DNA from: Bugula neritina
Lineage: Eukaryota; Animalia; Bryozoa
Assembly: GCA_964035545.1 (NCBI GenBank)
Contig: OZ037772.1
Coordinates: 6,928,889 to 6,992,888, forward strand
Length of the DNA stretch: 64,000 nucleotides
Reading direction: 5' to 3'
Part shown: positions 794 through 64,000 of the stretch, piece after piece
Numbering within the stretch: position 1 is the first letter of the stretch
Layout: each line of letters starts with the position of its first letter
Notes under the pieces: model-generated
Told to the model about the DNA's origin: nothing
What the model saw: the letters and a program-made list of their open reading frames with translations, nothing else
Databases searched by the model: none
Translations under genes and position numbers: made by a program

Positions 794-3641
794 ATCAAGA
801 GAGACATGACTTTAAATCTCTCACATCATTGAGAGAAGAAGTAAATATTTACCTCGCGAGTCAGCTGAGTGTAATTGTTGAAAAGATTACTAAGATATGT
901 TCTTTGAACAAGAAGGTGTGGAATGATCTTGATGATCAAGAAGAGAAGTGTTCAGATGTCATAAGAGAGATAGAGACAATTAGAAATGAAATGGTGAGTT
1001 TGTCAGTTAACTGTCTGTTACATATCATTGCTTGTTTTAAGTCTCATCACAATCATCACAGAATTATTTACAATATTCAATCAGTTGGTATATTGAAATT
1101 ACCTGGAAACCACAACCATCATCGCAATTATTTTCATGTTGATGAGAGCAGTCAACAAACTAGTTGTATAGTAATTGTATAAATTAGATTTTGGTTTGTT
1201 CGAAAAGGAAAATATTTGAAGACATGCAGAGTATGTAATATCACATCAGTTTTTTATTTTGAGAGTAATAAGCAAAGGAATTGTCTTTCAATTCGTTTCT
1301 GAGTTGAGCATTTTTTACAGAAAATCAGAAGTTACTTTCTTACAAGTGCTGCGGATAAAAATAAATTTAAGTTATTTAAGGTTCAAATATTTTTTAACAT
1401 GACAGCTATATAATGTTCTTATCTGAGCTTTCAATGTTTACATATTGAGCTGAACCATTCTGATTTTAGATCCAAAAAATAACCAATGAGAGTCAAAAGC
1501 TGATTGACAGAGTTACTAATCACAAAGAAGAAGTGACCAATCAGGTGGAAAATTTCTACAACAAGCTGATGCTGAAGAAAGATGAGTTGGAGAAAACACA
1601 AGCTGAGGTGCATCGTCTGCTGAAAGATGGTCATGTGACTGAGAAGATCAGACAGAAGAAGAGAGTAACAGAAGAGATGAACAGACATGATGCAGATAAA
1701 CTAGATCGATGTGAACTTGTTGATCCACCAACTGTAATAAATACAGGTTTGTGATGTTTTTATTTGAAAATAGATTGGCTATAACAATCAGATAACATCT
1801 GCCAGTTAGTTGGCTCTCTCAAAATGATGACTTAGCAAACTTTATTACAGTAGATTATAAACAATAAAGTAGTATGTATCCTATATCACTACCTACATAG
1901 AATTATATGCTGTGAGCAGCAAATTACATTCGCACACTATATATGCTGAAAGATCATAATTATTTCTCAAAGAAGCTGCTAGAGACCTACGACTGTTAAA
2001 ATTACAGTATCAATAAATAATTATTCTTCATTTGTATGACAATTAAGCACCATACTCATGCAACGTGTGTTAAATTAATACTTTATAACGAACCATTACA
2101 TGCATTACTATGTTATACTATATAATATGTGCACACATATGTCACACATATATACATGCATCCATACACACATGCATACATACTGTATATACACATATAC
2201 ATGGCATGCATATATATATGCATGCATATATACAAGCATGCATGTTATATGCATGCATATTATATGCACATATAACATGCATAAATTACACATATGGACA
2301 TAAATAATCTTTATAGTAATAATACAGGCATATATATAAGCAAAAATATACAAAACTTGTAGCAATTACCTCAAATAGTCATCTAGTTTTTTAGTCATAT
2401 AGGTTTATGCTGATTGGAATAAAATTAGGAAACATTTGCGAAAAATAAATGCTTTCTAATAAAAGTTGATTTCTAATAGTTGTACTAAATGACTAACCAT
2501 ATATCATCTTACAGGTCAAAACGCAAGTAGACTACTGAATGTCAGTCTAGTAACAGTTCCTTCTTCACTGACATTCATATATGAACATGAGACAAGTGGG
2601 TGGTGTTACTCAGTCAATCACAGACAAAATGGTGACATACTCATAGGTACTGGAAATGGAATACAGTTACTGAGTAGAGATGGTAATGAGCTGAGAGAAT
2701 ACAGTACAAGTGTGAAGAGAGTATCAGGAGTGATTGAGACTCCTCAGAATGTCTTCATTCTACACAGAGAAGGTGACGTATCTAAGGTAGAGATGTGTTT
2801 AACTGGTGACATCACAAAGAGACAACAACTGTTTCAGTTTGATAGAACAAATAACATTGGACCAGTAATGGCAGTCTCTGACAGATATGTTGTGGTGGAT
2901 CATCCAGATACTAAGCAGCTGATCATCTATGACTTTATCACTAAACAGACAGAGACTATTCATCCTGATGTGTATCCACGTGGTCTACACTTTCTACCAG
3001 ATAGTCATCTGCTATCTGGTGGTGGAGATAAATTGATAAAGTACAAAGTAGAGAATAGAAAGCTGACTACAGTTTGGACATGTGATGGTGTAACAGATGG
3101 ATACAGTGTCTGCACAGATTCTAATGGTCTCATCTATGTTTCTGGACAAAGCTTGAAGTCGCTTTACATCATTTCTCCATCAGGTACGGTTGCTTAAGCA
3201 TGTGTATGTTGTGAGTAGAAAACTCCAAATATATTTTTAGAGTTCTTCAGAGGTGTTAGAAATTTCTAAAAAATTAGCAAAACAAATATTGAAAGTTTCT
3301 GCAGTACTGTTTCTGCTGCATCAAATTACTGTCTCCATAATATAGTCACATTGCTGGAATCTAAGTTTGTGTATCCCCACATTTTTTCACATAATTTACA
3401 AACCTTGTCTATAAATTATGAAGTAAATTGAGTGCACTTTGATATTTTTTTAAACCTTCCAGTTAACTTTGTTCCCAAGGCAGTGTATATTTTTAAATAT
3501 TTGACAGGCGTTATTCTCAAGACACTGACTCATGATAAGTTACCAACTTGTTTTGCTGGAGTACCGAGTATCAGAGATGGAATACTGGCTGTACCTGGTT
3601 GGGGAGACAACAAATTGTATCTTTTTGAAATAGAAACCTAA
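794..3641 (+). CDS. TRIM-like gene copy A, 3' part (coiled coil + NHL-like beta-propeller); RING/B-box exons lie upstream of the window
   Basis: Exons 794-993, 1470-1746, 2515-3183, 3508-3641 with AG/GT boundaries and consistent phases. Internal exon lengths 200/277/669 match copy C. Frame open to TAA at 3641. Confidence 0.9.
2096..2302. repeat. Imperfect alternating purine-pyrimidine microsatellite (CA/TA/TGCA) in a copy A intron
   Basis: Visible low-complexity tract; source of spurious H/Y/I/M/C-rich ORFs. Confidence 0.85.
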
Positions 3642-5495
3642 GTAATGCGCTAAGCCTATGTTGGACTTGATTGTTAATATATGTTCCACATTTTACATTC
3701 TCATTCTATTGTTTAACATTTGGATTTAATGGGATGATATTTTGTTCTTATAACTACAATATATTCTAAATGAAATGACTTTTCACAAGTCTGACAACAC
3801 TTTTTTAAACGACCCATATAATGGATGTGATTTCATAAACTCTTCAGCAGTCACAGAAACCATTTTCAGTATGATTCTTACCCATAGTACAAATCCTGAT
3901 AAACTCATATTCAATACTATCTAAGTTATTGTGTTTGTGAAATTGCTTTAAATTGTATTTAGGTTGAGCTTAATCAGAGTTGGTTACCAGAATAATTATT
4001 ACTCTAATATATAATTTTTGCATATATATTATGCTATCTAACTATATTAAACTAATATTGGGAAGTTGCCTGTTTATAGCATAACATCAAAGCATGTACA
4101 CATATTATATTATATTAATAATAAAAATTATACTATATAGCACTCTATTATACTATATAACAGTATATTTGTTATAATTATTTACTTTTCAACTGAAGTC
4201 GAAGCTTTTTCACAAAAAGCTGCTTTAACACTTAACGAAAATAAAAAGGAATAAAACACACAAGTTTAAAGCTAGTTATGTGGCCAATAATAATTTTCAC
4301 TGAGCTCGCTAAAACTATAGTATGTGTTTGCAAATAGTTCTTGTTTTAACTTATATAATGTTTGCAACTGTTTATTGCTGCATGTAAATGTTTTTTATGT
4401 AAATTTATAAAAGATATTTATAAAATATTGTAGCTTATCTATACACACTGTTTTAACATCCAATACTAACCGTTTCACAATCTATAATGATATATGCGAT
4501 TGCATACAACCAAATTCTTAAATAATGAATACGTAATGATCAGCAAGACTCGCATAGAAGTTTTTTAAGACAATAATCGAGCAGAAAAAAGTGGCCAGTT
4601 ACTATGACATGGTGTGAAAAATTGTGATGCTTTTTATAACATATTGCACAAAAAACACTCAGTAATTGTCATTATGCTATATAAACTTTTTTATAACTTC
4701 CTATATCTCAATAACTGTATAATTATAACATGAGAGCATAACTGCTATAATTTTGGAGGTTATATATCACTAACGACATTCAAACTGGTTGACCTACGTA
4801 TAATAATCAATAGTGCTTAATAATACAAAACCTAGACAATTCTTATAACACATTGTGAGACGTTATTGTTGATTAGGTCTTTTATCACACACTCTATACC
4901 AGGTTAAAATAATTTTTCATGGAAAAAAAGCAGCGTAAATGTATGTGTATACATGAAAGTGTTAAACCAATCCTAAAGTGATGAACATTAAGCAAATAAT
5001 AATATATAACAAAGTTGTTGAAACATGATGTTCTATATTTATCACCACATGCTTATTTGATATACAATATTATTATTGATCCCAGCTATTGGCTATATTG
5101 GCTATATTGGCTATAAAAGCCTATTTTTTTAATGTTCAAGTGCAATAGTGACTGTTTCAATGCTCTTGCTTTTGGTATAGAAAGCTAGTCCCATACAATT
5201 GTAACAATAGCATAATTTATGTTGGTTAAAAATATGTAGCCATTATAGCTAGCTATTTTATCCAAATGTGTAACATATGGTTAATCTAGAAAATTCACCT
5301 TCTGATTTATGTTGTTTTTACAAAATACATTGCTGTTTTTTATTTAAAGTTTGACAAATTTTCTAAGTAGACTTTATTTTATTTAGCTCTGGTTAAAGTA
5401 CACTTTGAAATTTTTAATTCTTTAAAATTAAAGAGACTGTGACAATCTTAGGGACCAAGGTGTTGCACATCAAGAAAGATTATAGAAAAAACAAA

Positions 5496-62671: not shown

Positions 62672-62828
62672 ATATATATATATATATATATATATAAATA
62701 TATATATATATATATATATATATATATATATATATATATATATATATATATATATATATATATATATATATATATATATATATATATATATATATATATA
62801 TATATATATATATATATATATATATATA
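62672..62828. repeat. (TA)n microsatellite
   Basis: Visible directly. Confidence 0.97.
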
Positions 62829-64000
62829 GTAATGAGTCAACATAACCAAACCTATAAAGTATATAAAAATTAATATTTGCAGTGGAGCGAAGAGGATGAG
62901 TTGAATGAAGGGGAGCGACTTGCCAATATTCTGGCCATAGATGTATATATAGACTATATATATAGTCACAGATCATTTCAACATTGTAGATGAGTCATTC
63001 TAGAGATGAAATTATAGTAAAAATATACCTGCTGATGTTGAGTACAGAACATATCTTCACACTTCACACAGTAGCATGTCGCTAGTTGACCTTGACATCC
63101 GATGGCTATACAATACAGGGTACCAGGTTGACCCGTTTCTATGGCAACATTTGGTAACTCTTCAACCTCTAATGAGTCGTACTCTTTCCTGTAACAGACT
63201 GATGGGTTTATTACAAGACCTTTAATCATTTTTGTGCAGGACAGAAGATGTGTTTAATAAAAATATATTATTTTCTTCAAATGATTCCTAGCTAAAACTT
63301 GATAGAATGGTTAATAGTAAATAATTTCTTTTTAAAAGTTTATAAGAGCATATTACTCATTCACAAGTAGGGCAGGTCACAGTTTTATGTTTACTGTAAT
63401 GTCCTTGAATACAAGTCAAACAGAATACATGCTGACAAGGCAGCTCTCTGGGATCTCTCATGTCATCTCTTTTACAGACACAATAACCACACTCATACCA
63501 TTCTGGTAGTTCCTGGGCAGCCATCTTTGATTGCTTTAAGAATGAAAATGTTTGAGGGACTTTATAAGGTATAAAGACATGTAGTATTGAAATGTTATAG
63601 CAATACTTGTACAGAATACAAAGGCAACTGTGTGTATAACAAGTTGTAAAATATGGATAAAAAACAGTTTTAAAGCACCTAAATTTTTATCTTGAGAGAA
63701 TCAAGTTCAATACTGTTTATGCATTTTCTAAAAGTTATCATCAAGTTCTAAACATCAGCATTTGGTTTCATTCTACATACTTATAGCACTCACCTCTGTG
63801 CCTTTTGGTGGGTCTTGTTTGTAATCAAGTTTGAACTCAAACCTTGGCAGTAGCCTAACTGTCTAGTAAGCAGTTTCATTTTTCAGTATTTTTGTAGCCT
63901 CTCTTCCAAATATTATATAGCGCCTTTACATAATCATGTTATTGTCTTTCAAGGTTTTGTAAGAGTGGTTATATTAACTTTTTGTAATTGGGCTAAGTAG

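Follow-up and report, generated by a model that had tools for sequence, protein, structure and literature searches.

Paralog exchange and one-faced loop variation in a tandem TRIM gene family of the bryozoan Bugula neritina

The 64,000-nucleotide stretch of the Bugula neritina genome analysed here (contig OZ037772.1, C8:6928889-6992888; hereafter the window) carries four paralogous seven-exon genes, A to D, of a tandem TRIM family encoding a RING, B-boxes, a long helix and a C-terminal β-propeller. Propeller exons of this family exchange sequence between paralogs, and their variation is concentrated in the loops of one predicted propeller face, where positive selection was detected. Positions are window positions unless prefixed C8. 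The genes were delineated by tblastn with the exon peptides of gene C, the best-preserved copy, and the bounds of the propeller exons were set by MAFFT alignment, in which the AG|GT and G|GT boundaries are conserved. In order, the exons are RING, Cys-rich B-box1-like, B-box2, two coiled-coil exons, a propeller exon of ~669 nt and a last exon of ~126 nt; gene A lies on the forward strand and genes B, C and D on the reverse strand.

Gene C extends from 49248 to 39915. Its RING (ATG at 49248), B-box1-like and B-box2 exons lie within 48121-49248 (placed with Pfam), coiled-coil exon 1 at 43900-44172 (tblastn, approximate bounds) and coiled-coil exon 2 at 43244-43520, with a CAG|GTAAG donor at 43244/43243. 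The propeller exon (40731-41399, 669 nt, in-frame coding sequence 40732-41397) encodes five blades with nine top-face loops, as placed by alignment and by an AlphaFold2 (AF2) model, and the last exon (39915-40040, tblastn) encodes the sixth blade. Gene B extends from 36359 to 15480, with RING (36177-36359), B-box1-like (35627-35860) and B-box2 (35204-35395) exons, two coiled-coil exons (about 29628-29888 and about 28985-29240), an intact propeller exon of 672 nt (16308-16979) and a last exon of the 'C type' described below (15480-15605, 88% identity to that of C by tblastn); between the coiled-coil exons and the propeller exon lies a ~12-kb intron full of transposon sequence, as seen from its transposon open reading frames (ORFs). 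Gene D extends from 63536 to 51991. Its RING and B-box1-like exons (63026-63536) are separated by a 7.4-kb intron from the B-box2 exon, which lies with the two coiled-coil exons at 54257-55626 (both groups placed by tblastn), and are followed by an intact propeller exon of 672 nt (52542-53213) and the last exon (51991-52110, tblastn). The RING and B-box exons of gene A lie upstream of the window start. Within the window are its coiled-coil exons 1 (772-999) and 2 (1470-1748, 72% identity), both found by tblastn and approximate in their bounds, an intact 669-nt propeller exon in phase 1/1 and without stops (2515-3183), and a last exon encoding the sixth blade (3507-3629, tblastn). Gene A had been singled out as the outlier of the four in an initial annotation of the window, which was made from the sequence alone. 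It does diverge most of the four in two exons, coiled-coil exon 1 (53%) and the last exon (43%), but the latter is of the 'A type', the majority form in the cluster, and in this respect A is no outlier. The closeness of B and C was borne out: no other two window genes have last introns that can be aligned, and the last exons of B and C share 84% protein identity.

The RING encoded by exon 1 of gene C has C3HC4 spacing and scores above the Pfam cut-offs of PF13639 (32.3 bits, cut-off 27.3) and PF00097 (30.4 bits, cut-off 21); the RING exons of B and D are 87-88% identical to it by tblastn. The B-box2 exon of gene C also exceeds its cut-off (PF00643, 24.9 bits, cut-off 24.1), no Pfam match was obtained for the Cys/His-rich B-box1-like exon, and coiled-coil exon 2 of gene C is predicted by an AF2 model to form a single 78-residue helix (residues 2-79) with a predicted local distance difference test score (pLDDT) of about 90. 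With RING and B-box2 above the Pfam cut-offs and a long predicted helix, the window genes are, as judged from their encoded domains, genuine TRIM/RBCC genes, in agreement with the scaffold initially proposed. At the end of the RING exon of gene B (36177-36200), the last Cys pair reads CPIKTC instead of the CPTC of C and D, a two-residue insertion that alters the canonical C-x2-C spacing and may leave this RING impaired.

The C-terminal domain is an all-β propeller with four-stranded blades and not a B30.2 (PRY/SPRY) domain, and no Pfam match to SPRY was found in the propeller exons. The AF2 model of the gene C propeller, obtained with a 108-sequence alignment, comprises five four-stranded blades with a pLDDT of 94.2 and a predicted template modelling score of 0.90. 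It was computed from the construct 40690-41355, and model residue i corresponds to exon residue i+14, a registration on which the structural classes used below were computed. The best VIA-align matches of this model, which is without blade 6, were the six-bladed YWTD propellers of LRP6, nidogen and megalin (Z 20.5-21.0), closely followed by the NHL domains of Thin, Brat, TRIM2 and Lin41/TRIM71 (Z 19.9-20.3 for the same model); as these differences are below 1, YWTD and NHL are tied as fold class. Foldseek by itself did not tell WD40, Kelch and NHL propellers apart. Pfam NHL (PF01436) was listed neither for any of the four propeller exons (E limit 1) nor for the Watersipora homologues introduced below (E limit 0.1), and the weak matches of the propeller exons to COPA/B, SGL and THOC3 propellers were all under the cut-offs. 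The NHL label given in the initial annotation was therefore not retained, there being no Pfam match at cut-off and a fold tied with YWTD. The C-terminal module is probably a six-bladed NHL/YWTD-class β-propeller with a putative role in substrate recognition, a judgement that we make jointly with the overall explanation given below.

The gene C propeller exon was used as a query against the AT-rich genome of 216,009,554 bases in 321 contigs (assembly tzBugNeri2.1, reported as 216.00 Mb in 320 scaffolds plus a separately assembled mitochondrial genome, built with hifiasm from 132-fold HiFi coverage at a quality value (QV) of 53.7; PMC11480708). It matched at least 120 places and revealed more than 100 related propeller exons. 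Full-length propeller exons with 70-83% protein identity to C number 34 within C8:6.63-7.21 Mb (~600 kb), which is a lower bound. A second cluster at C8:9.31-9.42 Mb is ~50% identical to the gene C propeller exon, and scores of copies at ~25% identity are dispersed over several chromosomes. A protein library of 1.84 billion representatives, searched with the gene C construct that was also used for the AF2 model, returned only 174 matches, mostly single-exon fragments; the named ones were from Watersipora, the nearest being a 'TRIM25-like' protein of the bryozoan Watersipora subatra (XP_067933727). With so few matches, and the named ones from Watersipora, the family appears to be taxonomically narrow. 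Our literature search found no paper on bryozoan TRIMs. The analyses below cover 31 of the at least 34 copies, namely 30 loci of 3.6 kb and gene D from the window. All 31 propeller exons are free of stop codons and keep the AG|GT and G|GT boundaries, and no two of them encode the same protein. Pseudogenes had been suggested as donors of converted sequence, a proposal that found no backing in the intact state of all 31 exons or in the window, where no propeller pseudogene was present.

The seven variable propeller motifs listed in the initial annotation, with each of their A, B, C and D variants, are present in the alignments as written, and among the 31 copies hypervariable codons cluster along the exon (p = 0.0017). 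Amino-acid entropy has a period of 20.5 residues (power 5.7, where 500 shuffles reached at most 3.7), a result independent of structure registration, and the strand period is 10.5. Since the entropy period is twice that of the strands, variability recurs at every second loop, that is, on one face of the β-meander. Following the usual propeller convention and our own strand labelling, we term this face the top, with B-C and D-A as top loops and A-B and C-D as bottom loops. Per-loop mean entropy was 0.56-1.80 in the nine B-C/D-A loops and 0.14-0.64 in the nine A-B/C-D loops. As classes, top loops averaged 1.13, bottom loops 0.42 and strands 0.46 (top versus bottom, p = 2.7e-5); bottom loops did not differ from strands. 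The loop-focused variation proposed at the outset is thus that of the top loops, and its confinement mainly to one face is well supported on the modelled strand order.

Exchange between paralogs within the propeller exon is also well supported. The incongruent sharing of motifs among the window genes, first noted by eye, was recovered: A and B are identical base for base at TNNIGP, A and C share KRVSGVIE, and C and D share NHP, PVG and GVG. The parsimony-informative sites of genes A to D are split 8/6/6 over the three possible trees, none of which dominates. For the 31 copies, the pairwise homoplasy index (PHI) over 249 informative sites was 0.444, where permuted data averaged 0.533 (z = -11.2, with 0 of 2000 permutations as low). 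The signal persisted with third codon positions only (z = -4.2), which speaks against its being due to convergent selection on amino acids. In tests with maximum likelihood (ML) trees of segments, contiguous exon thirds rejected one another's trees by 173-328 log-likelihood units (approximately unbiased test, p < 1e-4). Because trees over-fit short segments, codons were also dealt randomly into three sets as a control; these gave 50-154 units (mean 97), and every contiguous value exceeded every control value.

A global permutation test in the style of GENECONV yielded 18 significant fragments, and several internal tracts are identical between copies whose introns cannot be aligned: 139 of 139 nt between L012 and L029 (exon remainder 85.0%), 99 of 99 between L004 and L010, 65 of 65 between B and L012, and 78 of 78 between D and C (exon remainder 78.9%). 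These tracts with unrelated flanks, together with the PHI and segment-tree results, substantiate the segmental gene conversion initially postulated for this exon. Other pairs share one flank only, as in L012-L023, in which the upstream introns are 99% identical and the downstream introns unrelated (L022-L030 and L018-L024 are similar), so that the propeller exon is also a crossover junction. The proportion of synonymous differences in the exon is compressed to 0.08-0.18, whereas the flanking introns range from 5% divergence to unalignable, and the histories of exon and introns are therefore decoupled. Among the youngest pairs, divergence is higher in the exon than in the introns, at synonymous and non-synonymous sites alike, as predicted for the import of foreign tracts.

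A further partition within the genes is marked by the last exon. Across the loci it falls into two clear classes: the 'A type' (..PSIRDGILAVPGW..), which with about 20 of 30 copies is in the majority, and the 'C type' (..VGAISVKDD..CWSE.MLRLF). The class varies in step with both the B5-C5 loop sequence and the end of the propeller exon, and this link indicates that the 3' part of the gene has a history partly apart from that of the 5' part. Gene D, the most divergent cluster member, has a middle tract identical to several others. Its codons 44-95 (52927-53082), beside this tract, have only 56-65% identity to every other cluster member, a case of local hyper-divergence. Import from another cluster was considered and rejected for this segment, with a best match elsewhere in the genome of 65% and only 42-46% in the 9.3-Mb cluster.

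Selection was assessed with loop and strand classes defined from structure and not from variability, to avoid circularity. Over the whole exon, median dN and dS (non-synonymous and synonymous divergence) were 0.123 and 0.180, with an omega (dN/dS) of 0.67. By the pairwise Nei-Gojobori method (NG86), top loops had an omega of 1.53 (bootstrap 0.93-2.52), and bottom loops and strands had values of 0.53 and 0.50, respectively. A joint likelihood test of the Muse-Gaut type (MG94), with a single alpha and beta for each class and with the trees fixed, gave an omega of 2.42 for top loops (likelihood ratio statistic 29.9). Under kappa values of 1.5-4 and 1, 3 or 6 partition trees, this estimate ranged from 1.7 to 2.6 (p from 2e-3 to 3e-9), against 0.46-0.62 for bottom loops and 0.54-0.76 for strands. 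Positive selection on the top-face loops only is thus well supported. The site-wise dN/dS analysis proposed in the initial annotation gave a weak signal. By fixed effects likelihood (FEL), beta exceeded alpha in 11 sites at p < 0.05, where about 5.6 are expected, with four at p < 0.01, and 29 sites were purifying. The positive sites agree with the class result in location, as 7 of the 10 in the structured range fall within top loops (Fisher p = 0.009), but their number is small and none passes Bonferroni correction.

Each of the ten top-face loops occurs in 12-25 distinct variants among the 31 copies, and of 435 pairs of copies 222 share no loop and 153 share one. As there are so many variants per loop and most pairs share none or one, new substitutions appear to dominate the generation of diversity. 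Quartets with all four combinations of adjacent loop variants are rare (0-2 per loop pair), and on this ground the idea that diversity stems mainly from a few cassettes shuffled in combination was rejected. The initial idea that conversion shuffles recognition loops therefore holds in part: tracts do carry loops, such as B2-C2 and D2-A3 in the L012-L029 tract, but most of the variants arise by new substitution.

Built on the observed gene structure, recombination, one-face variability and omega above 1 in the same loops, the best explanation overall, which we consider probable, is a diversifying TRIM propeller family shaped by conversion and by positive selection on one face. A lineage-specific tandem family of TRIM E3 ligases, with at least 34 copies in ~600 kb, would evolve by birth-and-death duplication. 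Ectopic recombination between paralogs inside the propeller exon, through gene-conversion tracts of 65-180 nt and crossovers joining unrelated flanks, would preserve the likeness of paralogs in the strand framework and in the A-B/C-D loops, and would occasionally carry loop variants across genes. Positive selection would retain substitutions in the B-C and D-A loops, all on the putative ligand-binding top face, and the outcome would be a recognition surface of its own for each paralog. The variable face may bind ligands, and the family may constitute a germline-encoded recognition repertoire that hands varied, fast-evolving targets, most likely viral or other non-self proteins or RNA, to a ubiquitin ligase. 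An immune or antiviral function is speculation by analogy with other systems.

Several points weigh against this explanation. The analysis is limited to the propeller exon and 1.5-kb flanks, in 31 of at least 34 copies. The AF2 construct comprises exon residues 15-222 and 14 intron-encoded residues, without blade 6, and the faces were assigned from strand order and not from three-dimensional positions. The NG86 bootstrap interval for top loops just takes in 1, and the FEL analysis is weak and underpowered, at about twice the chance expectation. The codon-model code was custom-written and used branch lengths kept at their values in nucleotide trees, and tests of this kind can be inflated by recombination within segments. 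Loop variants are mostly unique to one gene, and conversion may homogenise more than it diversifies.

In mode of evolution, the closest known systems are the teleost finTRIMs and the primate TRIMs of the TRIM5alpha type, which also combine a TRIM E3 scaffold and a large lineage-specific tandem expansion with positive selection in surface loops of the C-terminal recognition domain (PMC2657112). The bryozoan genes fall outside this group, as they encode a six-bladed propeller where the vertebrate proteins have B30.2/SPRY; exchange between paralogs within the recognition exon was explicitly demonstrated in the bryozoan cluster, and an antiviral role for it would be by analogy only. In mechanism, the closest are the HNWD genes of Podospora anserina (het-d, het-e and het-r), in which a propeller with a positively selected hypervariable face undergoes sequence exchange or concerted evolution that homogenises the framework (PMC1805685, PMC2873952). 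These genes encode seven-bladed WD40 propellers on fungal STAND NTPases (NLR-like), have an allorecognition role and exchange repeat units within and between genes, whereas in the bryozoan cluster the five-blade exons of separate TRIM genes exchange tracts. The TRIM-NHL proteins (Brat, Lin41/TRIM71, TRIM2/3, TRIM32/Thin and NHL-2) and TRIM56, with its NHL-like repeats, are the closest in architecture and resemble the bryozoan proteins in a domain order ending in a six-bladed propeller and in fold (Z about 20 over about 210 residues, with PDB 4zlr and 6fq3 among the matches). They differ in being few, conserved, developmental RNA regulators, with a propeller face that in Brat and Lin41 binds RNA, whereas the bryozoan cluster holds dozens of rapidly diversifying copies whose propellers have no Pfam NHL match at cut-off and score equally with YWTD. 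Plant NLR (NBS-LRR) clusters are tandem arrays that evolve by birth-and-death, gene conversion and unequal crossing-over, with diversifying selection on solvent-exposed residues of a repeat scaffold; they too are close in mechanism, but protein architecture and kingdom are unrelated.

A propeller here carries the diversification signature known for B30.2/SPRY in vertebrate intrinsic antiviral immunity, while TRIMs with NHL-type propellers have so far been viewed as conserved developmental RNA regulators. It is possible, although we regard it as doubtful on balance, that bryozoans independently built a large germline repertoire of intracellular TRIM E3 receptors that uses a variable, positively selected propeller face instead of B30.2, is maintained and remixed by conversion, and serves antiviral defence or, these animals being colonial, the distinction of self from non-self. 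If true, this would be a new structural solution, in Lophotrochozoa, to the problem met by TRIM5 and finTRIMs. Bryozoan immunity is almost unstudied, and the cluster offers a testable candidate for an invertebrate intracellular recognition repertoire, as well as what may be a clean natural example of conversion and selection splitting the work between framework and binding surface.

The alternative that survives best concerns function only, shares the evolutionary mechanism and overlaps with the explanation given above: the family might act in colony allorecognition, or in the control of fast-evolving endogenous targets such as transposon RNAs or proteins. It accords with the presence among the closest solved folds of the RNA-binding NHL domains of Brat, Lin41/TRIM71 and TRIM2, with the richness of the cluster in transposons, and with the role of HNWD, the nearest known hypervariable-face propeller with sequence exchange, in allorecognition. 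We nevertheless consider it rather unlikely, as no particular ligand is favoured by the evidence and allorecognition determinants are usually few, highly polymorphic loci and not dozens of fixed paralogs.

A less probable alternative is an ordinary young tandem family without adaptive diversification, in which purifying selection would act on the strands and one set of loops, the top loops would be unconstrained, with omega about 1, and recombination between tandem repeats would be a passive by-product. The whole-exon omega, the lower NG86 bootstrap limit for top loops and the modest excess of FEL sites are all compatible with such a family. Against it, an omega of 1 was rejected for top loops under every kappa and tree scheme, frames are open in 31 of 31 copies, and the bottom loops, which are equally solvent-exposed, are as conserved as the strands in entropy with an omega of about 0.5, where simple relaxation of loops predicts otherwise. 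We therefore hold this reading to be improbable.

That the mosaic is an assembly artefact, with near-identical exons of paralogs or haplotypes collapsed or mis-joined, is extremely improbable and an assembly chimera unlikely, for although short-read contigs break and pile up inside the exon because many paralogs are at least 92% alike, and B and L007 are 98.8% identical though 188 kb apart, the assembly was made by hifiasm from deep HiFi data at high QV, every gene, with introns of its own, is just a few kb to about 20 kb long, a probable same-sample contig crosses an intron/exon boundary of gene C (40510-40846) with zero differences, and frame and splice sites are kept in 31 of 31 exons.

The diversifying TRIM propeller family appears to be transcribed. 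Sequencing evidence was drawn from four runs, all as Logan contigs, one of which is recorded as 'METAGENOMIC RNA-Seq' and is guessed to be RNA. Contigs of this putative RNA run covered only the four exons of the gene C stretch compared, and no introns. In one contig, 43244 and 41370 are linked across 29 other letters, exactly as many as in 41371-41399, in agreement with the predicted exon 5/6 junction of gene C (43244|41399). With 4-13 mismatches to gene C in every 100 letters or so, the contigs indicate that members of the family, not necessarily C, are spliced and transcribed. The acceptor of the propeller exon is an unusual AAG|GT instead of CAG|GT at 41400-41427 and at homologous sites in L003, L004, L008, L018, L020, L024 and L029. 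The copies of this subgroup, mostly reverse-strand paralogs located at or to the right of the window, have a conserved TATATTGAAG upstream, and the RNA contig is consistent with use of the AAG|GT acceptor.

Locus L007 (C8:7132103-7135741) is a near-identical twin of gene B (15480-16979; L011) on the same strand, with flanking introns 98-99.7% identical and four amino-acid differences (D/N, N/K, L/P and D/N), three of them in or beside top-face loops. The pair reflects either a segmental duplication of recent date or a leftover haplotypic duplicate. Outside the window, partial propeller cassettes at C8:7004462-7004836, 7017700-7018107 and 7069916-7070320 align with query residues ~76-212. Each follows a full copy ~2 kb farther downstream, and two are free of stops; alternative exons or conversion donors are possible roles for the three. 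Between genes B and C, tblastn detected a RING-like fragment with an in-frame stop, a pseudo-exon (37572-37622, reverse strand), and, downstream of gene C, a last-exon-like fragment (39418-39483, reverse strand, 64% over 22 residues); the two resemble leftovers of a decayed paralog.

Transposon- or virus-like ORFs lie in or beside the TRIM introns at 18251-19138, 21440-22033 and 33589-34053 on the reverse strand and at 14569-15027 on the forward strand. They include a 295-residue fibre-protein-like product with tandem repeats of ~35 residues, a fragment of a Polinton/Maverick-like protein-primed family-B DNA polymerase, a piggyBac-transposase-derived ORF and a retroelement RNase H/integrase fragment. 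Just upstream of the first exon of gene B is a (CA/TG)n microsatellite of ~400 bases (36962-37468).

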